64,000 nt of DNA, from sequence record OP557969.1. One strand, given 5' to 3'. Under the pieces are notes generated by a model. It had not been told where the DNA came from. It made no database searches and saw only the letters and a program-made list of their open reading frames with translations. Positions 19,259 through 36,242 of this stretch are shown here, piece by piece. A program made the position numbers and the translations under genes. How positions within the stretch are numbered: the first letter of the stretch is position 1; every line of letters begins with the position of its first letter.

Positions 19259-19311
19259 CAGTACTCAATTGTTTTAGTATTATGTACACATACCAACACG
19301 GGAGAAACAAA

Positions 19312-19530: not shown

Positions 19531-19588
19531 TTGACAGTACTCAAATGTTTTAGTACTATATGTACATACCAACACGGGGGGAAACAAA

Positions 19589-19831: not shown

Positions 19832-19862
19832 TATAGTTTCATTAACTCAAGGAGAACATGCA

Positions 19863-20447
19863 ATGCGTAATTATACTAAATTCATCCGTACACTGTCAGA
19901 AATGGAAACCAACAAAGAGATCCTTTCAGCTTGTCGGTTAGCTGGCCTGGAGATCATCGGTGCTGGTTCTTCCCGTATAGTTTTCGCTTTAAATGATCGG
20001 TTAGTGATTAAGGTCGCGAATTGTGATGCGGGTGTAGAACAAAATGAAACTGAATGTAAGGTATGGAATTTTTTAGACTATGACCGCCCTCAATTGAAAC
20101 AGTACTTTGCAAAGGTGCATATGCATTTATGCGATCCTGATAATATGTTTATCGTTATGGATCGGTTGAGTACTGCAAGCAAAGGCAGTGTGAAGCACGT
20201 AAACGCGTGCAATGAATTAAAGTACAATATTAAACGTAATGCAATCGAACGCCAGCACCGCTTTGCTGATGCACTACAACACGTTGATGATACATTATCA
20301 ACACTAACGATAAGAGATATCAGAAAACAGAATATCGGCCAGGATCGTAATGGACTTATTAAAGTACTTGATTACGGTTTAACCAGCAATATCTGGAATC
20401 AGTACTATAAAAAGCGTGATGTGGCAGCAAGTAAGGTAACACGATAA
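19863..20447 (+). CDS. Ser/Thr protein-kinase-like protein
   Basis: GAGSSR Gly loop, VIK lysine, QNETE alphaC Glu, DIRKQN catalytic loop, LDYG (DFG-like). Confidence 0.85.
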   Translation: MRNYTKFIRTLSEMETNKEILSACRLAGLEIIGAGSSRIVFALNDRLVIKVANCDAGVEQNETECKVWNFLDYDRPQLKQYFAKVHMHLCDPDNMFIVMDRLSTASKGSVKHVNACNELKYNIKRNAIERQHRFADALQHVDDTLSTLTIRDIRKQNIGQDRNGLIKVLDYGLTSNIWNQYYKKRDVAASKVTR

Positions 20448-20458
20448 AAAAGATTAAA

Positions 20459-20546
20459 AAAGGGATTGACTCCGGTCAGTCCCTTTGCTATTATATATCC
20501 ATTGAGAGATAACTCACTGACCCATAGGGTGCGGAAGTGTATCTAT
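20459..20546 (+). ncRNA. terminator/promoter composite followed by motif-1 element
   Basis: same hairpin-promoter as 17189; CCCATAGGGTGCGGAAGTGTATCTA. Confidence 0.5.
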
Positions 20547-20667
20547 TATATAAGTATTCAGTACTGAAAACTATTTTTAAAAAAGTACTTGCATTGTACT
20601 TAGAATCAAGTATAATGTTTTATATCGAGAGGGGGAATGGTTCTCCCTGGCAATAAGGAATAAAATC

Positions 20668-20889
20668 ATGACTACAATGACTTGCATTTACGCTTCTAAT
20701 CTTCTGAATGATGCGGCCTTTAATGTTGATTCAGAATATCAATGTTATCGGGATGAAAATAAAAAAGTTTTTGTAGTTGATAATAATGGTTTCCATATTG
20801 AATTACAATCCGGCTTCACTGGTGTTGATGGTAAATCAGTATGGGGCGTACAGGATGATAAAGGCACATATCATTTTAAACGTAATTAA
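20668..20889 (+). CDS. early hypothetical protein
   Basis: promoter cassette, AAGGA RBS. Confidence 0.75.
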   Translation: MTTMTCIYASNLLNDAAFNVDSEYQCYRDENKKVFVVDNNGFHIELQSGFTGVDGKSVWGVQDDKGTYHFKRN

Positions 20890-20972
20890 GTATTGACAAA
20901 GTATATCAGTACTGTATAATAGTTTACATCAAGGGGAGAATAGTTCTCCCCGATACTAAAAGGAATAAAATC

Positions 20973-21377
20973 ATGACTACTACTAATCAAGCTCGGTCCA
21001 TCGCCAACGATAAAAATCATGCTGCAATGGTCGCTGGTTACATTGAAGCTATGCAATTCAGTACTGTACACAATGAGAACGGCGATTACCTGGAAGATTA
21101 TGAATTATCAGAGCAAGCCCATCAAGCGGCGGTGATTGCATGTTCTCGCTTCATTGAGAAACACGGTAATGATCTGGAAGTAGTTCGCGGTATGTTTATT
21201 GATTACGGTTATGAGCAAGCTGGTCATGATCTCTTTCTTACTCGCGAAGGTCACGGCACTGGTTTTTGGGATCGTGGTTTAGGTCACTATGGCGATGTAT
21301 TCACGAAGTACTGCGAAGAAATCAACGTTTGCGATCCCTATGTAGGCGATGATAATCTAATCTATATGGGCGAATAA
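20973..21377 (+). CDS. conserved phage protein (AGHDxxLTRxGHGxGFWDRG family)
   Basis: AGHDLFLTREGHGTGFWDRG...YVGDD. Confidence 0.85.
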   Translation: MTTTNQARSIANDKNHAAMVAGYIEAMQFSTVHNENGDYLEDYELSEQAHQAAVIACSRFIEKHGNDLEVVRGMFIDYGYEQAGHDLFLTREGHGTGFWDRGLGHYGDVFTKYCEEINVCDPYVGDDNLIYMGE

Positions 21378-21461
21378 AAGTATTTGACAAAGTATATCAG
21401 TACTGTATAATAGTTTACATCAAGGGGAGAATAGTTCTCCCCACTAAAAGGAAACAAAATT

Positions 21462-21734
21462 ATGTCTAGCTACTCCGCAACTATGATCATCAAAGATATG
21501 AATAACAATCCTACCGCCGCTGGTGGATCGTTCGGTAACATTAACCTAGATGGTCGGTTATCCATGCAATCAGCCATCGATGCAGCGAAAGAAGTTTTTA
21601 AGAATGAATGTACTGTTAGTAAGCTGGATTATATGGGTTTCGCTATCGAGAAAACTACTCGTTTTGTGAACTACAAAAATCCACTGATGATTGATACTAA
21701 CCTGAAAGCTAACGAAGTGGGGTACTTATTATGA
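21462..21734 (+). CDS. early hypothetical protein
   Basis: promoter cassette duplicated from about 20890. Confidence 0.75.
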   Translation: MSSYSATMIIKDMNNNPTAAGGSFGNINLDGRLSMQSAIDAAKEVFKNECTVSKLDYMGFAIEKTTRFVNYKNPLMIDTNLKANEVGYLL

Positions 21735-21922
21735 CAGTAGAAGAAGTTAAAAAAGTACTGGCAGTACTACGATATCATAATCATTGCAAGGTGAAGAATG
21801 ATCCTGATTATCTTGATTCATCCCTGGAGGAAGACACCTTGAACGCTATAAGCCATATGCAGACATTAGCAAAGCGTATGACTGAAAAGAATATGCCGGA
21901 CTATATCGGAAATAAAATTTAA
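21731..21922 (+). CDS. early hypothetical protein
   Basis: ATGA coupling. Confidence 0.7.
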   Translation: MTVEEVKKVLAVLRYHNHCKVKNDPDYLDSSLEEDTLNAISHMQTLAKRMTEKNMPDYIGNKI

Positions 21923-22009
21923 AAAGTACTTGCATTGTAGTTAGATTAACGTATAATGTTTTATATCGAGAGGGGGAAATGGTTTCCCCTCAAGTCCAGG
22001 AGATACACC

Positions 22010-22273
22010 ATGAACACTATCGAAATCACTATCAATGCACACGTATACGACAACGTAGTACTGCAAACTACTATGACCGCCAATGATACCAGTACTTTGC
22101 GGAATACTGTTATTAGTGCCGTATGTGCCGCTATCGGTGATGTCGCCCTGGAAAATGCAAAACACGTAAACGATGGTTTCACTATGTGCAAACGTGATAA
22201 CGCAAAACATATCATCGTGGAAGGTTACGGCGGTGTAGAATTTAATGTTTATATGAAAAAAGTACTTGCATAA
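22010..22273 (+). CDS. early hypothetical protein
   Basis: AGGAG RBS; start moved to MNTIE. Confidence 0.75.
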   Translation: MNTIEITINAHVYDNVVLQTTMTANDTSTLRNTVISAVCAAIGDVALENAKHVNDGFTMCKRDNAKHIIVEGYGGVEFNVYMKKVLA

Positions 22274-22340
22274 TAACTAAAACAAAGTATAATGTTTTGC
22301 ATAGGGGGAGATATCCTCCCCCACTAAAAGGAGTAATAAA

Positions 22341-22565
22341 ATGGCTAACTTTGATGAACTGATGCGGGAAGTAGCTAACCTGGCAGAAGAGAAGAAATCA
22401 TTCGATTCTATCTATAACACCGCTCACCGTGATTCAGTACTGGCATGTAACCAGGATCAAAAAGATGAACTAATCGCCACCTATCATGAAGCATGGAAGT
22501 ACTACCGACAATGGGAGAAAGAAGAAAGTGAGTCTACCATTGACGGCCTCAATAATCTAATCTAA
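22341..22565 (+). CDS. early helical protein
   Basis: promoter cassette, AGGAG RBS. Confidence 0.75.
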   Translation: MANFDELMREVANLAEEKKSFDSIYNTAHRDSVLACNQDQKDELIATYHEAWKYYRQWEKEESESTIDGLNNLI

Positions 22566-22641
22566 AAGTTTTATTTCAGTACTATTGACATAGCTTGATA
22601 GTACTGATGTAATAACTTTACTAACTACAAGGGGAAACATA

Positions 22642-22899
22642 ATGGATCAGTTCACACAATATCGGGTAAATCCACAAGCTATGGCCTACGTAGAAGACCA
22701 TAAAACGTTACCAGTACTGCAACCAGTTAAAGGCCATATCTATCGTGCAATGTCGTGGTGTACGGCCCAGGATGGCTATAAAACCGTAGCCGTGGGTATG
22801 TATTGCGGTGATGGTGAATGGTTTGATCCAAATAATCCGGTAGCCATTGACAGTACTGAAAAAATGAAATGGGCCGACTACATCGAAGATATTTCATAA
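22642..22899 (+). CDS. early hypothetical protein
   Basis: promoter, GGGGA RBS. Confidence 0.75.
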   Translation: MDQFTQYRVNPQAMAYVEDHKTLPVLQPVKGHIYRAMSWCTAQDGYKTVAVGMYCGDGEWFDPNNPVAIDSTEKMKWADYIEDIS

Positions 22900-22989
22900 A
22901 AACTATTTGACAGTACTAACCAGTAATGTATAATGTTTTACATAGAGCGGGGGAATAGTTCTCCCGCCAATAGTTTGGAGTAAAACATT

Positions 22990-23190
22990 ATGTCTATCGC
23001 TATCGCCATGGTTGAAGTACTGAAAGAAGCTAAAGCCAACCAGATCGACGTAAAGATCCAGGAACTACAAAACGGCTTAATCGGCTGTACTTGTACCGCT
23101 GGTGGAGCGGCAGACTATCGAGAACACGAATCACTCGAATCACTGGTTCGGTATCTTACCATGATCGTTGATGATTGGAGAATCATCTAA
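22990..23190 (+). CDS. early hypothetical protein
   Basis: promoter cassette, GGAG RBS. Confidence 0.75.
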   Translation: MSIAIAMVEVLKEAKANQIDVKIQELQNGLIGCTCTAGGAADYREHESLESLVRYLTMIVDDWRII

Positions 23191-23204
23191 CAAAAAAGAA
23201 TAAA

Positions 23205-23288
23205 AAAAGGGATTGACTCCGGTCAGTCCCTTTGCTATTATATACGCATAGACAAAAACTAGCCCACAGGGTGCATAGGTGTATCCAA
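23205..23288 (+). ncRNA. terminator/promoter composite followed by motif-1 element
   Basis: same hairpin-promoter; CCCACAGGGTGCATAGGTGTATCC. Confidence 0.5.
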
Positions 23289-23435
23289 AATATATAGTTA
23301 ATAACGGTGAGTAACTATCTGCTGGTGGAACTAAAACTATTAATAAAAAAGTATTGACAAAGTATATCAGTACTGCAATAATGTATCTCATAGGGCGGCA
23401 ATGGTGCGACGGCCCACAAAGTTAGGAGATTCAAA

Positions 23436-23768
23436 ATGACTACTTCAATCGCTATCGTTAAAGCTTTCATCCGTACTAATGTTTCCTCTGTATTCATCGA
23501 CGGCCTCGACCGTAACGTAGAATACTCAATCATTATCGCACAAACGGCAAACGGTTCTCGGTACATCCTGAATGATAGTGAAGCAAATCACTACTACTTC
23601 ACTAAAGCCACTGGCTTTAAACGCATCGATGCTGATGTAGTATACGCTAAGATGAATAAGCTGGTAGATAAGATTAACGCTAAAGGTACTATAGATTTAC
23701 AGTACTGGACCGAAACCGATCCAGAATATGGATCTCACCGCTACCTGAATCCAGGTATTAAAATGTAA
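23436..23768 (+). CDS. early hypothetical protein
   Basis: promoter, AGGAG RBS. Confidence 0.75.
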   Translation: MTTSIAIVKAFIRTNVSSVFIDGLDRNVEYSIIIAQTANGSRYILNDSEANHYYFTKATGFKRIDADVVYAKMNKLVDKINAKGTIDLQYWTETDPEYGSHRYLNPGIKM

Positions 23769-23857
23769 AAAGTACTTGCATAGTACTTAGATTCATGTAT
23801 AATGTTTTACATAGAGAGGGGGAAATGGTTCTCCCTCCTAAATTAAGGAGTTTTATC

Positions 23858-24259
23858 ATGACCTTCTCAATCACTTCCTTCGCTGACGTTTTAGTACTGG
23901 CTCGGACTTTTGGTAAAGATGCACTGGAGTACGCTGTAAGTAATGGCACTATCCAACCGGAACAGTGCCGCATCATTGGAAACTGCAAACGTTGGGCGGT
24001 TTCCAATACTATTGCACTGGAAAACTTCCACGATGGCAACAATGAATATTCTGTTGATGTAGTATTCGAAGCCGTTGATCTCGGCGGTATCTATAATACT
24101 AACCTGAATGATGTGCGTATCGTTCGCACTGGGTTCGGTGCTTATGATGTATCTATTCGTGAAGCTATGAACACCGGATACATTAGCAAGGACTTACTTG
24201 CTCACATCATGCAGCTGTGTACGGAACGTAACGAAGCACGCACTATCTTAGGGTTGTAA
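23858..24259 (+). CDS. early hypothetical protein
   Basis: promoter cassette, AAGGAG RBS; start moved to MTFSI. Confidence 0.75.
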   Translation: MTFSITSFADVLVLARTFGKDALEYAVSNGTIQPEQCRIIGNCKRWAVSNTIALENFHDGNNEYSVDVVFEAVDLGGIYNTNLNDVRIVRTGFGAYDVSIREAMNTGYISKDLLAHIMQLCTERNEARTILGL

Positions 24260-24327
24260 GCGTTACACATCATCAAACATCATAGGCCGCTCTCTAGCGG
24301 CCTTAACTATATCAGGAGTACATACAC

Positions 24328-24537
24328 ATGATCTATACAGTATACAACGTTCTAGGCACTATTGCAGGCGTACATGATAACGTCGATGGTGCTATGCGTA
24401 CAGTACTGCAACAGGTTCCACTAAAGCCTAAGACCATTAAGCAGATGACAGCACGACTAACCAGGGCGACGGCTGGCGTGGAAGTATGGCAGGACTATGG
24501 GGATACACAGATAATCGTAAGCGTAACGAAGGATTAA
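24328..24537 (+). CDS. hypothetical protein
   Basis: AGGAG RBS. Confidence 0.7.
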   Translation: MIYTVYNVLGTIAGVHDNVDGAMRTVLQQVPLKPKTIKQMTARLTRATAGVEVWQDYGDTQIIVSVTKD

Positions 24538-24564
24538 TGCGTAAAAGGATTTAGTACTGATTCA

Positions 24565-24632
24565 GAAAAAAGTCAAGGCGTTTTTAAAATTATGCGTTAA
24601 AAAAATGCATAGGTAATCCCTTGACTTTTTTG
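24565..24632. repeat. inverted repeat at early-block boundary
   Basis: AAAAAAGTCAAGG ... CCTTGACTTTTTT. Confidence 0.65.
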
Positions 24633-24756
24633 AAATAAAAGGGATTGGACTATGGCAAAATGCGTAGGGGGCTAAAGGGCGGGTAACCTTAGCGACTTCG
24701 ATAAAGGGGTATTACGAATAAAATGTTATTGACTTTTTATATAAATCGTATAAAAT

Positions 24757-24984
24757 ATGATTGATAATAATTTTAAGGGAGTCCCTGTGCGTATTTTAAC
24801 TCAAGCAGAACACCACGAAAGACTTATTAACAATATGGCTATGATAATGTATAAGTCACATAAACGTGGTATTGCCTATAAGCATGAATTAGTACTGGAA
24901 CTATTCATTGGGACTAACTATCAGGAAAGGTATGTCAACGATTGGATTTGGTATTTAATTGAAGATATAACGAGTAAACTATGA
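24757..24984 (+). CDS. family B paralog
   Basis: FIGTNYQE. Confidence 0.85.
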   Translation: MIDNNFKGVPVRILTQAEHHERLINNMAMIMYKSHKRGIAYKHELVLELFIGTNYQERYVNDWIWYLIEDITSKL

Positions 24985-25175
24985 TAATTTTAACTAAAGA
25001 AGAATATCAATCACTGTTACGTAAAAACTACGTAAAGATTTACAATACAGACACACACGTAGAACGAATGGAGTTATACCTTTTGATTACATTGGGAACT
25101 AACTATCAGGAAAGATGGGTGATTCAATATATGGATACATTGAAAAATAAAATATTGTCCACGAGGAAACAATGA
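24981..25175 (+). CDS. family B paralog
   Basis: LGTNYQE. Confidence 0.85.
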   Translation: MIILTKEEYQSLLRKNYVKIYNTDTHVERMELYLLITLGTNYQERWVIQYMDTLKNKILSTRKQ

Positions 25176-25381
25176 AAACTATAACACGAACCAAATCATT
25201 AGGTCTTATCTTGAAATACATGGACTTAATGGTGGATATCAGCAAAGACCTTCCTAAAACTGCAATTGAAGTTGCAAGAGCAGAGTACCGTCTATTAGCA
25301 GTACTGAATACTAACTACCAGGATGAATATGTTGACGATTGGATTCTATCATTAAAAAAAGATATAAAGAGTAAACTATGA
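25172..25381 (+). CDS. family B paralog
   Basis: LNTNYQD. Confidence 0.85.
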   Translation: MKTITRTKSLGLILKYMDLMVDISKDLPKTAIEVARAEYRLLAVLNTNYQDEYVDDWILSLKKDIKSKL

Positions 25382-25590
25382 TTTTTTTAACGCCAGAAGA
25401 ATATAAGAAACGTTTCAATTCTGTCCAGATTGACATTTTACTTATATACAATTCAAATGCAGACCTTGGCTTATCAAGGGTATTAGAAAAAGATTTACTT
25501 ATGGGTGCATTTTTGGATACAGACTTTCAGGTGTATTATGTAGGGGAATACTTAATTGCACTTCAGAATTACATTAAGAGTAAACTATGA
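25378..25590 (+). CDS. family B paralog
   Basis: LDTDFQV; close to 25587. Confidence 0.85.
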   Translation: MIFLTPEEYKKRFNSVQIDILLIYNSNADLGLSRVLEKDLLMGAFLDTDFQVYYVGEYLIALQNYIKSKL

Positions 25591-25799
25591 ATAGCATTAA
25601 CTCAAATCAATATACCGAACGCGTCGCTGCAAGGCAACTTGAAATCCTCATATTATATGAAGAGGCTGATGATTTGAACTTAGCATCAGTATTGGAAAAT
25701 GAAATACTATTGGGTGCATTCCTTGGTACTGACTATCAGGAGCATTTCTTGAATGAGTATATAGTTGCCCTCCAGAAATACATTAAGAGCAAACTATGA
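25587..25799 (+). CDS. family B paralog
   Basis: LGTDYQE. Confidence 0.85.
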   Translation: MNSINSNQYTERVAARQLEILILYEEADDLNLASVLENEILLGAFLGTDYQEHFLNEYIVALQKYIKSKL

Positions 25800-26014
25800 A
25801 ACATTTAAGTAATTACGAGAAGAATAAAATTATCGTTGCTGCAATAAACAAATATTTTACACTTCCTCACACAGAAGGTTTATGTGTAAGGGAACACAGG
25901 ATAAACACCACCGATATACGCATGATGGCTGTACTGGGGACTAACTTTCAGGAAGAGTATGTTGTTGCACACATAGTTGCCCTCACTGATTTAATAAGGG
26001 ACAAATGCAAATGA
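25796..26014 (+). CDS. family B paralog
   Basis: LGTNFQE. Confidence 0.85.
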   Translation: MKHLSNYEKNKIIVAAINKYFTLPHTEGLCVREHRINTTDIRMMAVLGTNFQEEYVVAHIVALTDLIRDKCK

Positions 26015-26229
26015 AAGACATAAACACTCAAGAATATCTTAAACGATTAGAACAAGGGAAGAACTTTAGACTTCAAGTTTACGATGATGAATCACTAACA
26101 TCCAATGAAAAGTATGTTTTACTAACAGACTCATCATTAATACCATTTGTGGGAACGAACTATCAGGAGGTTATGGTAGACAACCACATCACGGCCTTAA
26201 AATGTTATGTCAGGGATTTAGGTAAATGA
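26011..26229 (+). CDS. family B paralog
   Basis: VGTNYQE; ATGA coupling. Confidence 0.85.
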   Translation: MKDINTQEYLKRLEQGKNFRLQVYDDESLTSNEKYVLLTDSSLIPFVGTNYQEVMVDNHITALKCYVRDLGK

Positions 26230-26483
26230 AACACTTAACACTGGATGAATATGAAACTATAGTTCGTAAACTAACCCCTATAGCAAGGATAGTCTACGAT
26301 GACCCCAGCCTTACATGGAACCAAATGCGAGCTAAAGTTAATGAGCTATGGTTGTTGTACTTTATGGGGACTCAATATCAAGAGAAATATTGTACCGAGT
26401 ATATTGAACAACTAATGAATGTTATACAGGATAAACTAGATGATTATTGGCTCACAAAGCATGAAGATTTTATCAGGGGTTGA
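26226..26483 (+). CDS. family B paralog
   Basis: MGTQYQE. Confidence 0.85.
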   Translation: MKHLTLDEYETIVRKLTPIARIVYDDPSLTWNQMRAKVNELWLLYFMGTQYQEKYCTEYIEQLMNVIQDKLDDYWLTKHEDFIRG

Positions 26484-26727
26484 GTATCAGACTGCCCTCT
26501 TCTCTCTTCTAAACACCCTCCGCACGAACAATAAACTTTATAATTCCAGTACTGCTGATATTGTCAACGCTGATGTATATCTTAATAAATTTATAGGGAC
26601 TAACTATCAAGAACTGTTTGTTTTACGATATATCTCTACATTAAGAAACGAAATATCAGATAAAACCCGTCAAGCCAGAAGAGAATGGAAGAATGCGACA
26701 AAGACTAAATCACAAAATGTATTGTAA
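26461..26727 (+). CDS. family B paralog
   Basis: IGTNYQE; start moved to MKILS. Confidence 0.8.
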   Translation: MKILSGVEYQTALFSLLNTLRTNNKLYNSSTADIVNADVYLNKFIGTNYQELFVLRYISTLRNEISDKTRQARREWKNATKTKSQNVL

Positions 26728-26944
26728 ACTATTACAGGAACTGGCACAGAAACACTATGATACAATATCTTCCATATTACCCTATGATATCATGCGTTTA
26801 ATTCATAGTGAGGCAGAGATGTTAGTACTGATGACCGGTACTGATAAAATAGCAATCACCAGATCGATAGAGCAATATATTGATGCACACTGTCAATGTA
26901 TTAGAACTGAGATATGGAGGCGAGTAAATGAAAGTACTGAATGA
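26693..26944 (+). CDS. divergent family B paralog
   Basis: MTGTDK variant. Confidence 0.7.
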   Translation: MRQRLNHKMYCKLLQELAQKHYDTISSILPYDIMRLIHSEAEMLVLMTGTDKIAITRSIEQYIDAHCQCIRTEIWRRVNESTE

Positions 26945-27143
26945 GTTTCAGTATCATTGGAGGTTACAAGCAATAAGAGGGAAAGTTGTTAGTATTTCTT
27001 TAGACAAGTCTATTGCACAAGAGGACAAATGTGTTATAATAGCTGAAATGAAGTTGGGTGCTTTCGTAGGGACAAACTATCAAAACATCTACACAGACGT
27101 ATTATTAAGTGCCTTACGCAACAAGGTGTTATCCAGAGAATGA
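26928..27143 (+). CDS. family B paralog
   Basis: VGTNYQN. Confidence 0.85.
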   Translation: MKVLNEFQYHWRLQAIRGKVVSISLDKSIAQEDKCVIIAEMKLGAFVGTNYQNIYTDVLLSALRNKVLSRE

Positions 27144-27358
27144 GAAAATTAATAGGTTACGAATATGTTAAGCTTCTGAAAACCTGTAGTAGTAGCAGGG
27201 TAAAGATTCAATCTGATAAGAGCATCCCTGCCAACCTAAAACATGTAATGATAGCTGAACTCTATGCAGGGGCACTCATAGGGACAAACTATCAACAAAT
27301 GTATATAGACATGTGGGTTGATGCATTAGTCAAGGAGATCCGAAGTAAATGCAAATGA
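27140..27358 (+). CDS. family B paralog
   Basis: IGTNYQQ. Confidence 0.85.
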   Translation: MRKLIGYEYVKLLKTCSSSRVKIQSDKSIPANLKHVMIAELYAGALIGTNYQQMYIDMWVDALVKEIRSKCK

Positions 27359-27567
27359 TTAATTTAAGTAAAGATGAATATTATGTTCGTCTTGCAAAAA
27401 CTTATCCAGCACGTAACGCCGTTTATAATAGTAACATTATTGAACGCTCAAAGAAGTTGATCGTAGTAAATGAGATTAAGATGCTTTCAGTCTTAGGAAC
27501 AAACTATCAAGAGAAAGCTGTACTGTTGTTAATTGATGCCCTCAAGAGAGAGATACAAAGTAAATGA
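27355..27567 (+). CDS. family B paralog
   Basis: LGTNYQE. Confidence 0.85.
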   Translation: MINLSKDEYYVRLAKTYPARNAVYNSNIIERSKKLIVVNEIKMLSVLGTNYQEKAVLLLIDALKREIQSK

Positions 27568-27800
27568 TTCATTTATCTTACCATGAATATCAAAAACGTT
27601 TAAATGCATCAAGGAATATAAGGATTCAAATCTTCAATAATAAAAGATTGAAATCTGAAGCCAAAAAAATCAAAATGATAGAAGCAGAGTTATGCAACTT
27701 CCTGGGGACGAACTATCAGGATGATAAGGTAACAAACTATCTTAGAGAACTAATGATTAGTATCAAGAGTAAATGCAATGCTTTGGAGAATAAAAAATGA
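27564..27800 (+). CDS. family B paralog
   Basis: LGTNYQD. Confidence 0.85.
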   Translation: MIHLSYHEYQKRLNASRNIRIQIFNNKRLKSEAKKIKMIEAELCNFLGTNYQDDKVTNYLRELMISIKSKCNALENKK

Positions 27801-28054
27801 TCAATTTAAGTAAAGATGAATATACCGAGCGTATGACAAAAATTACGCACAAACGTAATACAATCTATCACAACCAAGAAATTCAACACAGTAAGAAAAT
27901 GATCATGATGCGTGAGTTAAAGATGGGTGTATTCTTGGGAACAAACTATCAAGAGCCAGAAGTAAATCGCTTAATTGCTGAGTTACTAATGGAAATCAAA
28001 GGTAAGCTGTACTTTTATCAAATGACCCAACCACTGAGGTGTACTGAACGATGA
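27797..28054 (+). CDS. family B paralog
   Basis: LGTNYQE. Confidence 0.85.
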   Translation: MINLSKDEYTERMTKITHKRNTIYHNQEIQHSKKMIMMRELKMGVFLGTNYQEPEVNRLIAELLMEIKGKLYFYQMTQPLRCTER

Positions 28055-28311
28055 GTACTATGAGTACTATGAATAAAATTAATAACATCAGATTATCAGA
28101 AAGATTTGATAGAATTGGTGAAGCCAGTAGAAGATACAATAGGGAATATGGTCATTTAAGCTTTTCTTTGGAAAAGAGATATGAACTTGAAGCAGAGTTT
28201 AAAATGCAGAGTCTCTTAGGTACACAGTACCAAGATCATTATGTAGAAAATTGGATTTCACTTCTAATCCAATCAATTTATGTAAGGAGTATTAAATGCA
28301 AAATGGAATGA
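28051..28311 (+). CDS. family B paralog
   Basis: LGTQYQD. Confidence 0.85.
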   Translation: MSTMSTMNKINNIRLSERFDRIGEASRRYNREYGHLSFSLEKRYELEAEFKMQSLLGTQYQDHYVENWISLLIQSIYVRSIKCKME

Positions 28312-28526
28312 TATACTTAACCAACGAAGAATTTCAAGAAAAAATGATTAAATCAGGTAAGATTACTCTTGAACATATACCAAATCAATCAGTATATGAA
28401 GTAGCAGCGAATGTATTGTTTCAGAAGCTACCTTACTTTCTGGGAACAGATAAACAAGAATTTTTGGTACAAAATATGATTGAGCATCTTCTAATGAGTA
28501 TTAGGGAAAAAGTAAATGCAACATGA
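28308..28526 (+). CDS. family B paralog
   Basis: LGTDKQE. Confidence 0.85.
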   Translation: MIYLTNEEFQEKMIKSGKITLEHIPNQSVYEVAANVLFQKLPYFLGTDKQEFLVQNMIEHLLMSIREKVNAT

Positions 28527-28776
28527 AATTATATACTTAACACATGATGAGTTAAAAGAAAGACTAGATAAATCCAAAAGACTTACAAATCAACTTCCTC
28601 ACAACCCAAACCAAACCCCAGCGGAAAGGAGTGCAGAAGTTTTATTCCAGTCTTTGTCATACCTTCTTGGAACTGATAGGCAGGAGTATCACGTTGAACG
28701 TATAATTAAATATCTTAAAATTACTATTCAGGAAAAGATATATGAACATCAATATAAAAATCTTGACGGTCAATGA
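28516..28776 (+). CDS. family B paralog
   Basis: LGTDRQE. Confidence 0.85.
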   Translation: MQHEIIYLTHDELKERLDKSKRLTNQLPHNPNQTPAERSAEVLFQSLSYLLGTDRQEYHVERIIKYLKITIQEKIYEHQYKNLDGQ

Positions 28777-28993
28777 ATATCATAATATTATAATGAAGAC
28801 TAATAGTGCAATTTCTAAAAAATCAAATCCAAAATACATACTGGAGCACACATTTGAAGAACGTCAATTAGCTTTAGTTGAAGCAAAACTTCTTGCACTC
28901 CTAGGAACAAACTATCAAGAAGAGTACGTTAGAAAACTAATATACCTTTTAACTAAACACATCAGGAAAAGAAATGCAGTACTTGACCGATGA
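28742..28993 (+). CDS. family B paralog
   Basis: LGTNYQE. Confidence 0.85.
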   Translation: MNINIKILTVNEYHNIIMKTNSAISKKSNPKYILEHTFEERQLALVEAKLLALLGTNYQEEYVRKLIYLLTKHIRKRNAVLDR

Positions 28994-29183
28994 CGAATAC
29001 GGTGTTATCATCCTTGATGTTATCAATAAAGAATACCACAGGAAACAACGTTACGCTTGTTATGAAGATAAGCAGCTTTCTATAGCTGAACAACAATTAG
29101 TTCATTTATTAGGAACAAACTATCAAGAACAATGCACTGAACGTTACCTGTATCTTCTGTCGAGGAAAGCACAAAGATTATGA
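28974..29183 (+). CDS. family B paralog
   Basis: LGTNYQE. Confidence 0.85.
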   Translation: MQYLTDDEYGVIILDVINKEYHRKQRYACYEDKQLSIAEQQLVHLLGTNYQEQCTERYLYLLSRKAQRL

Positions 29184-29395
29184 AAATTTTAAGCCACAGT
29201 GAACAAACAGAATTGTTAATCTTTAATACAAGTAAATTCTTAAACATAACATTGTCTGATATAGATGAGGATGAAAAAGAGTTACTTAGAGCAGATTTAA
29301 GAGTTCTTTTATATATTGGAACTAACTTCCAAGAGCAATTCGTCGAGGACTACATCGATGAACTAAAGTCTGCTATCCAACGGAAATACAAATGA
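29180..29395 (+). CDS. family B paralog
   Basis: IGTNFQE. Confidence 0.85.
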   Translation: MKILSHSEQTELLIFNTSKFLNITLSDIDEDEKELLRADLRVLLYIGTNFQEQFVEDYIDELKSAIQRKYK

Positions 29396-29628
29396 AAATT
29401 CTTTCAAGTTCTGAATACCACGAACTATTAAGTAGTTTAATTCTAAAGTTGTTTATAACAAAAAGCACAAAATTACCGGATGAAGAAGTACGTGTTCTAG
29501 TAAGTGAAGTATATGTTAAAGCTACTCTAGGAACTAATTATCAAGAATGTAATATTAATGATTATATCAATGATCTAAAAAGGTATATACAAAACAAATG
29601 CGAATCATTACCGAAGAAGAATACCTAA
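29392..29628 (+). CDS. family B paralog
   Basis: LGTNYQE; close to 29598. Confidence 0.85.
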   Translation: MKILSSSEYHELLSSLILKLFITKSTKLPDEEVRVLVSEVYVKATLGTNYQECNINDYINDLKRYIQNKCESLPKKNT

Positions 29629-29834
29629 CAATCATAAATGGACTATTTTTGAAGTTATTTGCCATTAACACATCAAAAATACCAGATACTGATAAAATTA
29701 TTAAGTTAAATGAAATCTACGTTCAAGCTACTCTAGGAACTAACTATCAAGATGCCAATATGTATAATTACATTAATACACTCAAAAGGGTAATAAAATT
29801 AAAATGTACAAACAGCCAATACACAAACCTCTAG
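29598..29834 (+). CDS. family B paralog
   Basis: LGTNYQD. Confidence 0.85.
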   Translation: MRIITEEEYLTIINGLFLKLFAINTSKIPDTDKIIKLNEIYVQATLGTNYQDANMYNYINTLKRVIKLKCTNSQYTNL

Positions 29835-30034
29835 GAACAGCAGAATACATTGAACTAATGGCAGCAAACTTCTCATCCTTTCAGAAACTGATGCAAGAAT
29901 CAAATAATGATTTAGAATATCATATCAAAAGTTCAGATTTAAGATTGCTACTCACTCTAGGAACAGACAGTCAGTACCAATTCGTACAGGAACATATTAG
30001 AGCACTTTTAAATGGCATCAGGGATAAACTATGA
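29804..30034 (+). CDS. family B paralog
   Basis: LGTDSQY. Confidence 0.8.
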   Translation: MYKQPIHKPLGTAEYIELMAANFSSFQKLMQESNNDLEYHIKSSDLRLLLTLGTDSQYQFVQEHIRALLNGIRDKL

Positions 30035-30246
30035 AGGTAATATCAAACCAAGAGTACTTGGCACTATTCAGAAAAAATAGTCAAGAATTTCTGAATATTG
30101 ATATGAGGACTGATATAAGTGAACTTCAGAAAAATCTTTTGCGTTCAGAGATGATAGTACTGACACTCTTAGGAACACAGCATCAAGAGAGAACTGTTGA
30201 TTCATATATTGAGATTCTTAAGAAGCTTATACAGGAAAAACTATGA
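30031..30246 (+). CDS. family B paralog
   Basis: LGTQHQE. Confidence 0.85.
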   Translation: MKVISNQEYLALFRKNSQEFLNIDMRTDISELQKNLLRSEMIVLTLLGTQHQERTVDSYIEILKKLIQEKL

Positions 30247-30464
30247 GAATCATAACACAAACAGACATATTTAAGTTAGCAAGGGAACATACATCTGAAA
30301 TTGATGCTATAGTATCAAAAAGTTACAATGACCCTTATACACAAGATGTACACTACAATGAATTATGGGTGTATATACTTTTAGGTACAAATTATCAAGA
30401 GTACGCATTACAGAAGTATTTGTTAGCTTTACGTGATGCTACTGCTAATGGAGTGATTGTTTAA
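30243..30464 (+). CDS. family B paralog
   Basis: LGTNYQE. Confidence 0.85.
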   Translation: MRIITQTDIFKLAREHTSEIDAIVSKSYNDPYTQDVHYNELWVYILLGTNYQEYALQKYLLALRDATANGVIV

Positions 30465-30465
30465 T

Positions 30466-30708
30466 ATGAAAGTACTATCTGAATTACAAATGGGACAGAG
30501 ATTTAATAAGTACTATCATTTACTGAAACCTATACAGAGGATTAAATGTTCTTATGATGAGAAACAGGTTTTAATTTATGAGCACAAGTTCTTTGTATCA
30601 TTAGGTACGAATCATCAAGAGTACTATTTGAAGTTGTACTTGATTACATTAATAGATTTAATTCACTATAAAACCAAACAAGCTAATAAAGAGAAATATG
30701 AAAACTAA
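30466..30708 (+). CDS. family B paralog
   Basis: LGTNHQE. Confidence 0.85.
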   Translation: MKVLSELQMGQRFNKYYHLLKPIQRIKCSYDEKQVLIYEHKFFVSLGTNHQEYYLKLYLITLIDLIHYKTKQANKEKYEN

Positions 30709-31042
30709 TATACAACTCAAGGTGTATAAATCCTATGAACATATATATATCAAAAGTAGTCTATGTAGAGATGTAATGGACTACAAGGGTAAGCCATTCA
30801 CAATTACGTATGATTCTTATATTAATGATTTATATATATCATTTGTTAATTACGAAAATAAAATATACAAGCACGTTGATATTAAAGATTTAAGTACTTT
30901 ATCTGAAGAGGAATACTTTCAAGAATCATTAGTATGGGATTTAGAATTTCCTATGCCATTAGTACATAAAATGATAGTACTAATGAAAGAAGCTAAACAG
31001 AAGCCTAATGGTGATTATGAAGAACACATCGTTGAGTATTAA
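30698..31042 (+). CDS. family C paralog (short type)
   Basis: LSEEEYFQESLVWD. Confidence 0.85.
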   Translation: MKTNIQLKVYKSYEHIYIKSSLCRDVMDYKGKPFTITYDSYINDLYISFVNYENKIYKHVDIKDLSTLSEEEYFQESLVWDLEFPMPLVHKMIVLMKEAKQKPNGDYEEHIVEY

Positions 31043-31258
31043 ATGAAAAGATTATCATACAAAGATTACACCAATCTTATCAGGACTTTACAACCAGAAA
31101 TTAGAAGAATTAATTCTCTTCCTATATCTAATGAAGAATGTTCAGTACTGAAAGATGAGTTAATCTTAAAACACACAGTAGGAACAAACTATCAAGCTGA
31201 TAGTGTTCGATATTTAATTTGGGGGTTGATGTGTCAAATAAAGTCCAAGTGCTATTGA
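31043..31258 (+). CDS. family B paralog
   Basis: VGTNYQA. Confidence 0.85.
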   Translation: MKRLSYKDYTNLIRTLQPEIRRINSLPISNEECSVLKDELILKHTVGTNYQADSVRYLIWGLMCQIKSKCY

Positions 31259-31322
31259 CAGTACTTGACGGAGCTTTTCATTACTGATATAGTACACTAA
31301 CGTTAATCATAGGGTAGAAATT

Positions 31323-31568
31323 ATGTTAAAATTTTTAAATTTCCTTATCGTCTTGTGTATTGTTCTTGGGATTGCACCGTTTGTACTGGTGTATATGGAT
31401 TCAGATGAAATGCAAAAGATGAATTGCACAAGGACAGGACAGAGTAGAGAAGAGACGATTCTTATGCCTGTTACGGTTATTGTTAACAACATGCCCATTA
31501 CAAACATGGTCCCTACCCTAACGACAACGTACCAGTACTCTTGTACAGACGGGGAGAGGTGGAGATAA
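31323..31568 (+). CDS. N-terminally anchored membrane protein
   Basis: hydrophobic N-terminus, two Cys; upstream TTGAC promoter. Confidence 0.75.
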   Translation: MLKFLNFLIVLCIVLGIAPFVLVYMDSDEMQKMNCTRTGQSREETILMPVTVIVNNMPITNMVPTLTTTYQYSCTDGERWR

Positions 31569-31891
31569 TGCGTAAGTTCAATTGTATTGTACGTAAGAAT
31601 TCATGTTATATTGTAGTAGCTGATTTTAATACAGGTTCTGGGTTGAAGATATTTGAGTACAGAAAATGTAATAATTCTTTTCATTGGAAATTAGGTGCAA
31701 GAAAAACAAAAACAATTTCAGTACCGAATTTATGTTCTATCTCTGAAGAAGAAGAGTTTCAGTACATGTTAGTACATGATGTTTCTTTAGGATTTACATT
31801 TGGAGATATGAAGGAAGTACAAAAGCAGATGATTGCACATTGTCATCTTCCAAAGAATTTTGTTCAACACGTATGTGAATTCCACATATAA
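31568..31891 (+). CDS. family C paralog (short type)
   Basis: ISEEEEFQYMLVHD. Confidence 0.8.
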   Translation: MRKFNCIVRKNSCYIVVADFNTGSGLKIFEYRKCNNSFHWKLGARKTKTISVPNLCSISEEEEFQYMLVHDVSLGFTFGDMKEVQKQMIAHCHLPKNFVQHVCEFHI

Positions 31892-31900
31892 GAGAATAAT

Positions 31901-32212
31901 ATGAAATTTAATATAGCAAAAACATCGAGTATATGTATTTTTGGTTATGCAGAAGAGTTAGGTGATATTGACATTCTTTTGTACAAAAAGGATGGTGTTA
32001 TGCATTTCAAGTACCAAGATGAAGAGGCAGACAATTATCCTTTACCTAATTTAGTACAAATACAGGAAGAGGAATTATTCCAGTACAGTTTAGTATACGA
32101 CATTGATATTTGCACGATGCCAGTATTAATTAATATACAAAAAGTGATGCTCGATATGTATGATAAGCTAATACAAGGTATGTCAGGGAGGATCATTGAA
32201 ATCGATATATAA
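31901..32212 (+). CDS. family C paralog (short type)
   Basis: IQEEELFQYSLVYD. Confidence 0.85.
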   Translation: MKFNIAKTSSICIFGYAEELGDIDILLYKKDGVMHFKYQDEEADNYPLPNLVQIQEEELFQYSLVYDIDICTMPVLINIQKVMLDMYDKLIQGMSGRIIEIDI

Positions 32213-32408
32213 GAATTTACCTAATGCATATATGTTGAAGTACAAAGAGTTTATTAAAGATGTATATGTAGATCCTTTCAATATAAAATTATCAGAGTTC
32301 GATGTATTATTTTATCTAGGGACAATAGTACAGGACCAATACGTTAATAATCTAATAAGGTGTTTGAAAAAGGAGATACAATGCAGACCCAAATGTACAA
32401 AAAAATAA
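32196..32408 (+). CDS. family B paralog
   Basis: LGTIVQD. Confidence 0.75.
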   Translation: MKSIYKNLPNAYMLKYKEFIKDVYVDPFNIKLSEFDVLFYLGTIVQDQYVNNLIRCLKKEIQCRPKCTKK

Positions 32409-32644
32409 ACCGTTATTTGTATGCATCAAAGTACAGGGATTTTTGTTTACAAGGAGGTGAGGACGATTTCGGTCTGAGGTTATCGGAATTTAATATGTTA
32501 TTTTATCTTGGTACATCCGTACAAGAAGAAATGGTTCAGAAATTTCTCAATAACCTTGTACAAAAAATTAATATTCAAATTATGATGCATAAATTACAGA
32601 ATGAGATAAATGAATATGAATCTAGAAATAGTTCAGGATCTTAA
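32381..32644 (+). CDS. family B paralog
   Basis: LGTSVQE. Confidence 0.8.
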   Translation: MQTQMYKKINRYLYASKYRDFCLQGGEDDFGLRLSEFNMLFYLGTSVQEEMVQKFLNNLVQKINIQIMMHKLQNEINEYESRNSSGS

Positions 32645-33005
32645 AAAAGTAATATTTCTTTTGAATACAAGAAGCTCTTTATATAAGGAGTTCAAAGATA
32701 AGGATAGTTCTTTTAAACCAGTATGTATAGAATTCAATGATTTAATTACAGATGCATTGTTTGAATTTTCCGAGAAATATCAAGATACAGTGTTTGGTGT
32801 TAGGAATGCTATTCATCCAATTACAGGCACAAGGAAGATAACGTTATCTCATTTTACATTTGACAATAAAGATTTATTCAGTTATAATCCCAGTACATCT
32901 TTATATTTTATTCCAAAAGGAGACAAGAATAGTCCGATTCATTACGGATGGATTATATCTTATGTAGTGCAAGGAAAGGAGTATCCTATCAAATGGCACG
33001 ATTAG
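32610..33005 (+). CDS. hypothetical protein
   Basis: 131-aa coupled ORF. Confidence 0.7.
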   Translation: MNMNLEIVQDLKKVIFLLNTRSSLYKEFKDKDSSFKPVCIEFNDLITDALFEFSEKYQDTVFGVRNAIHPITGTRKITLSHFTFDNKDLFSYNPSTSLYFIPKGDKNSPIHYGWIISYVVQGKEYPIKWHD

Positions 33006-33145
33006 GACAGGAAGATTATAGTTTAAATATATTATTAAGAAATATTAATGCGGATTATTGTGTATGGGTTAAGAATCGAGACATGATGTATTATGATTTT
33101 TATTTAGATTATGCCATCAAACGCTTTTTAAGAGAAGAATATTAA
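32993..33145 (+). CDS. small hypothetical protein
   Basis: AAGGAG RBS before MARLG. Confidence 0.55.
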   Translation: MARLGQEDYSLNILLRNINADYCVWVKNRDMMYYDFYLDYAIKRFLREEY

Positions 33146-33329
33146 TGAAAGTGGTTAATACAAAAGCAATAAATGATTTAAATGATTCTTTATTAGTAAG
33201 TATTAAGTTGTATTATAATATTCATTTAAAGGGTGGTATTAACGATTTTAGTTATTACTTAAGTGCAATATCACAAGAGCATTTAAATTATCAAGATCAT
33301 TTATTACATCCAAATCATTAAGGCAAATT

Positions 33330-33890
33330 ATGAATGAGATAGAGTTATTATCACACAAGATTAGTACAATAGCTACAGTACTGAACAACAAAAATAAAGT
33401 ACATAGTTCCTTTTTAAGAATTAATAAAGTTGGTAGTAGTTTATATTTGGAAGTAAAAGCGGGTTTTGCAGGACAGTACAATGATAAAATCAAAGAAGAA
33501 GTTAAGGGAAATGAAGATGCTTTCATTGAGGTTTGTGCAACAGTTGGTTCAAATCCAATTTCAGTATCACCGTTAATGCGAAATGAAAATTCAGAATTTG
33601 ATTCCAGTTTCGAAGGTTATTTGTGGTACAATTATGGTGATAATTATTTTATATATCAGAATTCCAAAACGAATTATAGTGAAGAAGGTATAAAATTCAT
33701 TGATCCTTACAATGAAGCAGAAGTATTTCAGAAATCCCTAATATACAATACAAATCAAATGAAGTATCTTATGTTGTTTAGTACAATGCATTTGAATCCA
33801 TTGAAAGATAATTTAAAATTTTTCATTCGTTTAGAATTAGTTGATATTACTTATGATCTTTTAATCCAAGGAAGTAGTTATGAAGTATAA
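33330..33890 (+). CDS. family C paralog (long type)
   Basis: NEAEVFQKSLIYN. Confidence 0.8.
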   Translation: MNEIELLSHKISTIATVLNNKNKVHSSFLRINKVGSSLYLEVKAGFAGQYNDKIKEEVKGNEDAFIEVCATVGSNPISVSPLMRNENSEFDSSFEGYLWYNYGDNYFIYQNSKTNYSEEGIKFIDPYNEAEVFQKSLIYNTNQMKYLMLFSTMHLNPLKDNLKFFIRLELVDITYDLLIQGSSYEV

Positions 33891-34194
33891 AATGATGTAT
33901 ACACCATCATTAGTATATGTAGAATTAGAATCAAATGATAATGGGTGGAATTTCATTAAACATATCGATACCAATACATGGTACATGGCTCACTTGGATA
34001 ATAATGTGGTATCAGACCATTTTATGGATTTCAATATCTTAGATGAAGATGAATTTTTCCAAATGCAATTGGTGCTTGACACAAATGGTTTTGATATGGT
34101 ATTATTAAAGAATATACAGAAAGCTGTTGATGAATTAATAGCTGAACATAATTTGAGCGAAATAAGGATTAGTTATGACCTCGAAGTACTGTGA
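33880..34194 (+). CDS. family C paralog (short type)
   Basis: LDEDEFFQMQLVLD. Confidence 0.8.
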   Translation: MKYKMMYTPSLVYVELESNDNGWNFIKHIDTNTWYMAHLDNNVVSDHFMDFNILDEDEFFQMQLVLDTNGFDMVLLKNIQKAVDELIAEHNLSEIRISYDLEVL

Positions 34195-34525
34195 GTTTGA
34201 AATTAATAAGTTAAGAGAATGGTTTTATAATATTGAAATTGAGGCCATTCCTTATCATACATATGAACAAAGTGATTTACAATGTATTGATATTAGGGAG
34301 TTGTACAAATATTATCAAAGTGCGTTAGAGATGCATAAATTATTTTTGAGTACGGATTTCTTTATGCAGTATAATTTTGAGGAATATAATAATTATAACT
34401 TAGTACAGAAATACGTAGTAGCAAAGTACATGTACATTCAAGGTATTAAAGGTTGTATTGAATTCAATACTGTTCTTGCTTTAGTTGAGGTAATTTTATG
34501 TACAGCATGTGCATATCTAATTTAG
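34175..34525 (+). CDS. hypothetical protein
   Basis: coupled ORF. Confidence 0.7.
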   Translation: MTSKYCEFEINKLREWFYNIEIEAIPYHTYEQSDLQCIDIRELYKYYQSALEMHKLFLSTDFFMQYNFEEYNNYNLVQKYVVAKYMYIQGIKGCIEFNTVLALVEVILCTACAYLI

Positions 34526-35016
34526 AGTTTAGTTTAGATGCAGCCTTTAAATTTGCACATAAGATAGAAACAATATATAGTTTTTTTAGTGAAGTTTATG
34601 AAGTTTGTGCTAAACGATATATCGATACAATAGACATTAGCAATAAGTTCGATGTATGGCACAAAACAATCCAAAGCAAAAAGCAGTGTGCAGCAGTTTT
34701 TAGTGTTTTATCATTTAATCCCAGCAATTGTTACCCAGAGAAGCATGAACGTTATCCCAATGACGACATGTGGTTTGTGTACAAAGAAGATGCTGATATG
34801 TCGTCATTTGAAGTTCCTGATAATTTTGATATCAGTGATTTAACAGAAGAGTGGTGGTTCCAGCAGAATTTAGTACATGATGATATTGATTTATTTTTCT
34901 ATATCGTGTTCAAAATACTTTATCACAACAATATAGTTAAAGATAGTGTATCGTTTTCATGTCTATATATTGATGAGTTGTTCGAAGATATCAAAAATCT
35001 CAAGCCTGTATCGTAA
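34498..35016 (+). CDS. family C paralog (long type)
   Basis: LTEEWWFQQNLVHD. Confidence 0.8.
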   Translation: MYSMCISNLEFSLDAAFKFAHKIETIYSFFSEVYEVCAKRYIDTIDISNKFDVWHKTIQSKKQCAAVFSVLSFNPSNCYPEKHERYPNDDMWFVYKEDADMSSFEVPDNFDISDLTEEWWFQQNLVHDDIDLFFYIVFKILYHNNIVKDSVSFSCLYIDELFEDIKNLKPVS

Positions 35017-35031
35017 GATATGGGCTTTTTT
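35002..35031 (+). terminator. intrinsic terminator
   Basis: AAGCCTGTATC-GTAA-GATATGGGCTT and T-run. Confidence 0.75.
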
Positions 35032-35087
35032 GTTTGACTCAAGTACAAATGAATGGTACAATGTGAAATCATTTTAAGGAGAACCCT

Positions 35088-35636
35088 ATGGAAAATTTTC
35101 AAATACCACAAGATTACGATACAGCGAAAGAGATGGTACACAAGGTTCATTACATTTTTAATGAATTAATTATTGCAAATTCATCCTGTATGCAAATTGA
35201 GTTAAAGGGTATTAATAGTGAAGAAGTTTTTTTGGCTTCTCCAAGTTCAATTATTCCGTTGTATGGTATGGACCGTTTATGGTTCATGAGAGATGCACCA
35301 ATTGACAGGTACAAAATACAAAAAAAATCAGAGAATGATTTTCTTTATGATTATTTTAATATTTCATTACAAGCACACGATATAAGTACAATGAGTGCAG
35401 AGGAATATTTTCAGCACAGTACAGTGTATAGTCCAGAAGAAATCTTTGTTGTTATGCTTGTTGCAAAATTGAGTACTGTTGATTTTGGGACGTACCCAAA
35501 TAAATCATTCAAGATTATTATTCCTGCATTTGTTGATCTTTATGATTTCATTGTGCACAAGAAAGAAAGTACAGTGTACGATATGCAGCGTTCAAATATC
35601 AGTTTAATTGCAGTAAGTGCAGGGGAATTAAAATGA
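35088..35636 (+). CDS. family C paralog (long type)
   Basis: MSAEEYFQHSTVYS; AAGGAG RBS; upstream promoter. Confidence 0.85.
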   Translation: MENFQIPQDYDTAKEMVHKVHYIFNELIIANSSCMQIELKGINSEEVFLASPSSIIPLYGMDRLWFMRDAPIDRYKIQKKSENDFLYDYFNISLQAHDISTMSAEEYFQHSTVYSPEEIFVVMLVAKLSTVDFGTYPNKSFKIIIPAFVDLYDFIVHKKESTVYDMQRSNISLIAVSAGELK

Positions 35637-36241: not shown

Positions 36242-36242
36242 T

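Follow-up and report, generated by a model that had tools for sequence, protein, structure and literature searches.

How does a jumbo phage come to carry some thirty versions of one small gene, and what might they do for it? The question is raised by Escherichia phage ph0011 (OP557969.1, 348,217 bp, Asteriusvirus), a jumbo phage of E. coli in which a head-to-tail array of small paralogous genes occupies positions 24757-31258 of the + strand. The window analyzed here is the first 64 kb (64,000 nucleotides) of this genome, and the array interval is 100% identical to the record at the same coordinates. Most genes of jumbo phages have no known function, and how such genomes grew is debated; the ph0011 array shows that copies gained by tandem duplication were afterwards each kept by selection over the long term and did not decay. 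We found that these genes form a lineage-specific multigene family, phrog_4148, which was born by local tandem duplication and then deeply diverged. Throughout the genus, purifying selection has kept its slots as positional orthologs, with exchange of whole-gene alleles between phage lineages.

Extent and organization of the array

A profile hidden Markov model (HMM) was seeded with 25 array open reading frames (ORFs) and searched against the ORFs of the window. The initial annotation, made from the sequence alone, had proposed 27 contiguous paralogs in a total of about 32, and the ORF listing together with the profile recovered exactly this set, here called family B: 27 contiguous genes (24757-30708) and the outliers at 31043, 32196, 32360, 43717 and 43913, all of which had been named before (the third as 32381, the first ATG of ORF 32360). 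The five outliers, none of them in the seed, score between E = 3e-18 and 4e-7. Beyond the 32 members no window ORF scores better than E = 1, and the remaining 284 kb of ph0011 contains no family-B match better than E = 0.07. A second family-B array elsewhere in the 348-kb genome, where the family accounts for 32 of the 582 annotated features, is ruled out by this whole-genome profile search.

The contiguous block consists of 27 overlapping ORFs of 64-95 amino acids (63-95 over the full member set), and every one of its 26 junctions is an overlap. The 4-nt ATGA overlap is found at 14 junctions when the longest ORFs are taken and at 17 with family-consistent start codons, in agreement with the coupling, mostly through ATGA or short overlaps, that had been proposed. 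For 20 of the 32 members a Shine-Dalgarno-like motif lies within the preceding gene, and the last codons of many members (e.g. 24966-24984, 25363-25381 and 25572-25590) double as the ribosome-binding site and overlapping start of the next one. Part of the C-terminal conservation may consequently reflect a dual-coding constraint and not a protein constraint. The interval 24757-31258 is made up of family genes except for one unrelated gene of 114 amino acids (30698-31042, phrog_13866-like), and the first gene probably starts at GTG 24787, after AAGGGAG.

At the DNA level, a 17-mer core occurs 19 times at up to three mismatches, versus 0.27 occurrences expected. Seventeen of these lie inside family genes (four exact, two with one mismatch, seven with two and four with three), so that its description as recurring almost verbatim holds for about half of the members. 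Tandem Repeats Finder detected no long-period DNA repeat across the array, and an Rfam scan of the window gave zero matches. The array is detectable only at the protein level and through the short DNA core.

Sequence conservation and predicted fold

The members have a mean pairwise identity of 25% (maximum 51%) and a mean column identity of 24% over all 32 sequences. Conservation is centered on a Gly-Thr-x-x-Gln turn, in which the Gly is present in 29 of the 32 members and the Thr, the Gln and one Leu in 31 each; apart from these, entropy is low at hydrophobic positions and at a Glu-Tyr pair close to the N-terminus. High-entropy columns are distributed across all helices, in disagreement with the hypervariable middle segment that had been suggested.

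Using AlphaFold2 we modelled member 15 (27797-28054, HMM E = 1e-27). The model is confident (pLDDT 95.4, pTM 0.79) and shows four helices, at residues 6-15, 17-24, 31-45 and 52-77, with the Gly-Thr turn sitting between helices 3 and 4 and bridged to residue 2. BFVD models of relatives superpose on this fold, and the BFVD matches returned by Foldseek all belong to the same phage group. Against the PDB, Foldseek gave no fold match, the best E being 2 and no TM exceeding 0.49. The family is predicted, on the basis of this model, to encode soluble proteins of about 70 amino acids with one compact four-helix fold, in which one pole (N-terminus, Glu-Tyr pair, helix-3 Glu and Gly-Thr-x-x-Gln turn) would be conserved and the other surface variable, the clustering of conserved polar residues at that pole being read from the topology only. 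No transmembrane segment was found in family-B members, cysteines number 0-3 per member with no conserved Cys column, and the isoelectric points (pI) range from 4.4 to 9.8, with 16 of the 32 members basic (pI above 8) and 11 acidic.

Searches of protein family databases placed the family in PHROGs v4, where all nine members tested match phrog_4148 with E values from 9e-6 to 2e-25; seven of the nine matches lie at 1e-14 to 1e-25, and the matches cover profile positions 1-72 of 74, the full length. The phrog_4148 entry is a bare catalogue record with function unassigned, without structure or genomic analysis. For all 32 members, Pfam-A and NCBIfam returned nothing above cut-off (sub-threshold Ty3_capsid and pheT_bact matches in one member each) and PADLOC-DB returned a single match (MTase_II, E = 0.0099), which we took as noise. 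The family profile searched against PDB sequences, which include solved anti-CRISPR and anti-defence proteins, gave a best E of 1.3. Neither the HMM searches nor the structural ones led to a known single-function family.

Particular candidates were rejected on these data. A helix-turn-helix regulator was discarded because no such family was matched in Pfam or NCBIfam and the TetR-like fold match has a probability of 0.33 and a TM of 0.41. A zinc ribbon of the phage G type was discarded because there is no paired CxxC motif and no conserved Cys column. A relationship with family A, another group of small paralogs in the window (1126-3080), was discarded given an hhalign probability of 0.8%.

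Duplication, orthology and selection

Eleven of the 27 contiguous members have the adjacent gene as their closest paralog, versus 2.0 expected (P<0.0002), an excess which indicates that the array grew by local duplication, long ago. Nearly every ph0011 member has its reciprocal best match in the same slot of other phages, and these positional orthologs are 60-97% identical versus 25-35% for paralogs. The pooled dN/dS of the array is 0.33-0.37 and falls to 0.17 in the turn motif, and all 32 ORFs are intact; these values point to purifying selection, with no sign of pseudogene decay. The common four-helix fold, the conservation limited to core and turn, the pI range and the dN/dS values together bear out the earlier description of a diversified repertoire on a fixed scaffold.

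Member 10 (26693-26944) is degenerate in that it has lost the turn motif, carries a 7-residue insertion and scores at E = 0.035 against the profile. Its ORF is intact, its orthologs are 76-84% identical and its dN/dS is 0.23-0.31, values which show that these orthologs are still under purifying selection. Member 26 (30243-30464, E = 3e-22) is the sole member with a dN/dS of 0.8-1.6 against all seven phages, which could reflect either relaxed or positive selection.

The dS of neighbouring genes within one phage pair ranges from 0.02 to 1.3, a spread between adjacent genes that indicates mosaic exchange of alleles between phage lineages. Identity switches between phages average 0.133 at gene junctions versus 0.084 across the core; as this comparison uses non-independent phage pairs, its P value is only indicative. 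Recombination at the conserved core, which the initial annotation had offered as a means of upkeep, was rejected as the main mode because the switches are larger at gene junctions and the slots are stable positional orthologs.

Distribution among phages and earlier reports

The array interval aligns to 35 other Escherichia/Salmonella jumbo phages of the PBECO4/121Q/phAPEC6 group at 83-90% nucleotide identity. The copy-number survey of related phages that had been recommended gave 20-31 members in each of eight phages, at a syntenic position and all on one strand, with 25 members in 121Q and 30 in phAPEC6. A profile search of 1.84 billion protein cluster representatives matched family B in only 99 clusters, of which 52 correspond to the nine phages compared and 47 are more distant. 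We traced six of these 47. Five are part of tandem arrays with 12-31 members, carried by Asteriusvirus-like genomes or by uncultured contigs; the other is on a 3.8-kb contig with three members. One of these contigs has no nucleotide match to any GenBank phage. An exact 17-mer scan of IMG/VR returned 13 loci, all of them chance matches with zero family members.

A natural fusion, P0081 (8001-8810, loci L009-L011), joins a family-B domain to an orphan C-terminal part of 200 amino acids and is carried by Asteriusvirus-like contigs of about 350 kb in the E. coli assemblies GCA_036253055.1 and GCA_036253035.1. It has no Pfam match, its C-terminal part has no relatives and its single-sequence model reaches a pLDDT of 33; it hence gives no functional hint.

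Such an array was mentioned in one sentence for phage 121Q (Hua et al. [quoted passage not shown] With 25 and 30 members at the syntenic position, these are almost certainly the same array as that of ph0011, so its existence is not new. Those papers give no family definition, fold, selection analysis or context, and the "very similar" character of the genes is not borne out by a mean identity of 25% and a maximum of 51%. The family definition, the fold, the slot-wise orthology, the selection, the mosaic exchange, the operon form and the position at a repeat boundary are undescribed in the papers searched.

Genome context and expression signals

The genome of phage fEgEco12 has a direct terminal repeat of 20,993 bp, determined by PhageTerm and restriction digests (PMC13070987). 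Using blastn we mapped the first base of this repeat to window position ~3358 and its inner boundary to ~24690 (approximate), so that the repeat equivalent extends from ~3358 to ~24690 and the array begins about 40 bp beyond it, where it opens the unique genome region. Near ~3358 the GC content and the GC skew change sign (a composition change at 0-4 kb), which together with the fEgEco12 left end indicates that the ph0011 record is permuted relative to the packaged genome. The terminal repeat of ph0011 is collapsed in the assembly. Conservation between phages drops sharply at the repeat boundary, from 90-99% identity for the genes at 14976-24537 to 36-90% at 24538-40000.

In the window, the + strand has 32 near-consensus sigma-70 promoters (at least 11 of 12 positions) and the - strand has 5; the stretch from 23382 to 32860 is free of them. 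The sole candidate for the block is a sigma-70-like promoter (TTGACT-16 nt-TAAAAT, 10/12; 24729..24756, + strand) directly 5' of the first array gene, and no + strand terminator was found inside the array. The repeat-end genes of PA5oct, a related phage, are early and require host RNA polymerase (PMC7318152). Being a promoter-free block just ~40 bp past the repeat boundary, the array is probably one early operon, and the 27 genes probably form one polycistronic unit with translational coupling.

Array proteins are absent from the phAPEC6 virion proteome (PMC7247149; 62 proteins, Table 1), which has no gp46x-gp49x entry, the array in that phage being gp467c-gp489c. An internal protein of the T4 type (polymorphic, injected, anti-restriction and packaged in the virion) was rejected on this ground, with the caveat that mass spectrometry can overlook small proteins.

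Possible functions of the array

We tentatively infer, with somewhat less than even confidence, that the array is a diversified repertoire of binders that act in the cytoplasm, for host takeover or counter-defence. Host RNA polymerase would transcribe the block early in infection as one operon, all members would be made together in the cytoplasm, and each would bind a different host or defence-system partner via its own variable surface. The conserved pole would then be either a folding nucleus alone or also a dock for a common partner.

Several points weigh against this proposal. No homolog of known function is present in Pfam, NCBIfam, PADLOC, PHROGs or the PDB, and function is a matter of deduction for every member. 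The analysis of selection by position, proposed at the outset, supported the constraint on the turn motif and yielded no alignment column with a pN/pS above 1; there is consequently no family-wide arms-race signal or positive-selection hotspot. The downstream variable genes have a dN/dS of 0.35-0.40, the same as the array, and the repeat-region genes one of 0.10-0.14, and because the array equals its variable neighbours at threefold the value of the repeat genes, these data could also be read as relaxed constraint. The promoter of the array is weaker than those of at least 23 repeat-region cassettes and does not have their form. The early timing of array transcription is itself deduced, and ph0011 encodes its own sigma factor, which makes middle expression possible. 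In addition, the AlphaFold2 input alignment consisted of the 32 paralogs only, and virion mass spectrometry easily misses small proteins.

Considering these points, other explanations have to be weighed. The members might be functionless or nearly neutral filler produced by tandem duplication during genome expansion, as implied by Hua et al. 2017 for 121Q. In its favor are the clear tandem-duplication signature, their published statement (PMC5646251), a dN/dS threefold that of the adjacent repeat genes and the lack of a known function; however, a dN/dS of 0.33-0.37 is far under 1, the 32 ORFs are all intact, and positional orthologs are kept genus-wide, including in 121Q, JNE01 and uncultured relatives. 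Even the degenerate member 10 is constrained (0.23-0.31), and paralogs that average 25% identity are old and not "very similar". Filler is the rival least compatible with the selection data, and we regard it as very improbable. The variation in copy number among viable phages (20-31) and the gain or loss of single slots weigh against a different idea, in which the members would be subunits of one hetero-oligomeric cytoplasmic assembly and would dock to one another via either the conserved pole or their long, amphipathic C-terminal helix. Co-transcription with translational coupling would match doses, the pole is common to all members, and helix 4 is long (52-77) with conserved hydrophobics at heptad-like spacing, all of which fit such an assembly. 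The member charges, spanning pI 4.4-9.8, the compact and confident model already obtained for a monomer and the absence of the family from the virion (phAPEC6) speak against it, and we judge it distinctly unlikely.

The charges are relevant as well to the possibility that the members bind nucleic acid, either as regulators or as structural proteins on DNA or RNA, a role proposed for the ~35-copy zinc ribbons of phage G. The basic character of 16 of the 32 members (pI above 8), the small size and helical nature of all of them and the precedent in Bacillus phage G (PMC7824862) are in its favor, but 11 members are acidic, there is no helix-turn-helix or zinc-ribbon match in Pfam/NCBIfam, the 0-3 Cys are patternless, and the best PDB fold match, a TetR-type regulator, reaches only E = 2 and TM 0.41; this explanation seems unlikely. 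A narrower form of the binder proposal would make the members polyimmunity-type antitoxins, each neutralising one variant of a polymorphic toxin, for example an abortive-infection or contact-dependent effector. The architecture matches, with small diverged paralogs in tandem on one strand and made together, and whole-gene alleles are swapped between lineages. We nonetheless hold this form to be quite improbable: no immunity family was matched in Pfam/NCBIfam, no toxin gene was recognised beside the array in a search that was not exhaustive, its neighbours being without domain matches, and the family was never in a non-phage context among the seven places sampled.

If the members are diversified binders, the array would be among the largest single-scaffold repertoires known in a phage; it would also provide a compact, well-folded and naturally diversified scaffold whose partners could reveal the host functions that a jumbo phage must handle first. 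If they are filler or one oligomer instead, the array bears directly on the published idea of genome expansion by duplication.

Comparison with known systems

Terminal multigene families are found in large eukaryotic DNA viruses, such as the Bcl-2-like proteins of poxviruses and the MGF families of asfarviruses. As a functional analogy only, the array would share with them tandem paralogs by a terminal repeat close to a genome end, a small helical scaffold, diversified surfaces, a copy number that varies between isolates and early expression; there is no homology, the hosts and targets differ, and a function in ph0011 would follow by analogy only. A further, doubtful proposal is that the array is the phage counterpart of such families: about 30 co-expressed binders on one scaffold, with every slot specialised for its own host factor or defence effector and all docked through the conserved pole to one adaptor hub, with mosaic exchange of whole-gene alleles tuning the repertoire to local hosts. 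A speculative candidate for this hub, by co-occurrence only, would be the Clp machinery that the phage itself encodes. Annotated in the ph0011 record are ClpP, a Clp ATPase and a ClpS-domain protein, along with a sigma factor, at 84302-84997, 170840-173128, 259249-259794 and 313766-314731; they matter to the array solely as speculative partners or regulators.

Bacterial polyimmunity loci carry tandem SUKH or Imm-type immunity proteins and are believed to broaden immunity to polymorphic effectors. These loci and ph0011 have in common a head-to-tail arrangement of small, diverged paralogs, but the ph0011 array has no HMM match to those families and no linked toxin recognised in a non-exhaustive search, and is located on a virulent phage.

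Host-takeover modules are situated at phage genome ends, examples being the SPO1 terminal-redundancy module, the T5 pre-early genes and the Kayvirus Tre genes. With these modules and with PA5oct (PMC7318152) the array would share many small early proteins of unassigned function, located at the repeat end of the genome and read by host RNA polymerase. The modules, unlike the array, lie inside the repeat, and their genes are mostly mutually unrelated and typically have their own promoters, a description that fits the upstream repeat genes of ph0011. The array was rejected as a terminal-repeat host-takeover module of the SPO1/T5/PA5oct type because it is ~40 bp outside the boundary and consists of a single paralog family with one weak promoter and no cassettes.

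In another jumbo phage, Bacillus phage G, a small zinc-ribbon protein has undergone a very large, lineage-specific tandem expansion to about 35 copies (Iyer et al. 2021, PMC7824862), and its function is likewise unassigned. The phage G protein is a zinc ribbon, in contrast to the four-helix protein without Cys pattern of ph0011, and the two have no sequence relationship.

Individual members and other features of the region

The remaining members of the block, all on the + strand, are given here with their profile E values. Members 1 to 3 lie at 24757-24984 (5e-21), 24981-25175 (2e-20) and 25172-25381 (2e-22), followed by member 4 (25378-25590, 4e-23), whose nearest paralog is its neighbour at 25587 (46%), member 5 (25587-25799, 3e-23) and member 6 (25796-26014, 2e-25). 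Of the eight phages compared, only fEgEco12 and Turkey3 have close orthologs (96%) of member 7 (26005-26229, 5e-25). After member 8 (26226-26483, 5e-27) comes member 9 (26440-26727, 1e-21), with a family-consistent start at 26461. Between the degenerate member 10 and the modelled member 15 are members 11 (26928-27143, 1e-24), 12 (27140-27358, 2e-27), 13 (27349-27567, 7e-25) and 14 (27564-27800, 3e-26). The series continues with members 16 (28051-28311, 2e-20), 17 (28296-28526, 8e-20), 18 (28516-28776, 8e-12), 19 (28742-28993, 1e-21), 20 (28974-29183, 6e-21), 21 (29180-29395, 2e-25), 22 (29392-29628, 2e-26), 23 (29598-29834, 3e-24), 24 (29804-30034, 1e-21) and 25 (30031-30246, 8e-24), and member 27 (30457-30708, 5e-21) ends the block.

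The outliers, also on the + strand, are member 28 (31043-31258, 3e-18), member 29 (32196-32408, 7e-10), which has a TTG start, member 30 (32360-32644, 4e-7) and the distant members 31 (43717-43935, 9e-8) and 32 (43913-44104, 1e-14; phrog_4148 E = 1e-17).

In the terminal-repeat equivalent, at least 23 copies of a per-gene cassette of 60-90 nt fill positions 3734-23854; the array has none. Each cassette combines a -35 element and an extended -10 element with an A-rich tract, a GC-rich 5' hairpin and a ribosome-binding site. Three identical 28-nt hairpins (17190-17217, 20459-20486 and 23206-23233) have a -35 hexamer within their stem-loop and a -10 element after it. They are reminiscent of the promoter stem-loops that have been proposed as mobile regulatory cassettes in T4-type phages. 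About 800 bp inside the presumed left end, a block at 4144-4295 (family D9) contains about nine overlapping copies with an 8-bp periodicity, and could be iteron-like or related to packaging.

Other paralog families are also expanded in this part of the genome. Family A is a second tandem array, with at least nine paralogs of 60-77 amino acids at 1126-3080 of the window, continuing from OP557969.1 346656-348072, and it adjoins the right terminal repeat, just before it. The 114-amino-acid gene interposed between members 27 and 28 (+ strand; phrog_13866, E = 5e-9) belongs to a set of nine phrog_13866-like paralogs of 104-141 amino acids in the window, at 30698, 38520, 38942, 39298, 39593, 42007, 45247, 45596 and 47465. 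A further family has seven members of about 150 amino acids at 40190-48212, and the occurrence of several such families indicates that the whole 25-48 kb region is built from expanded families.

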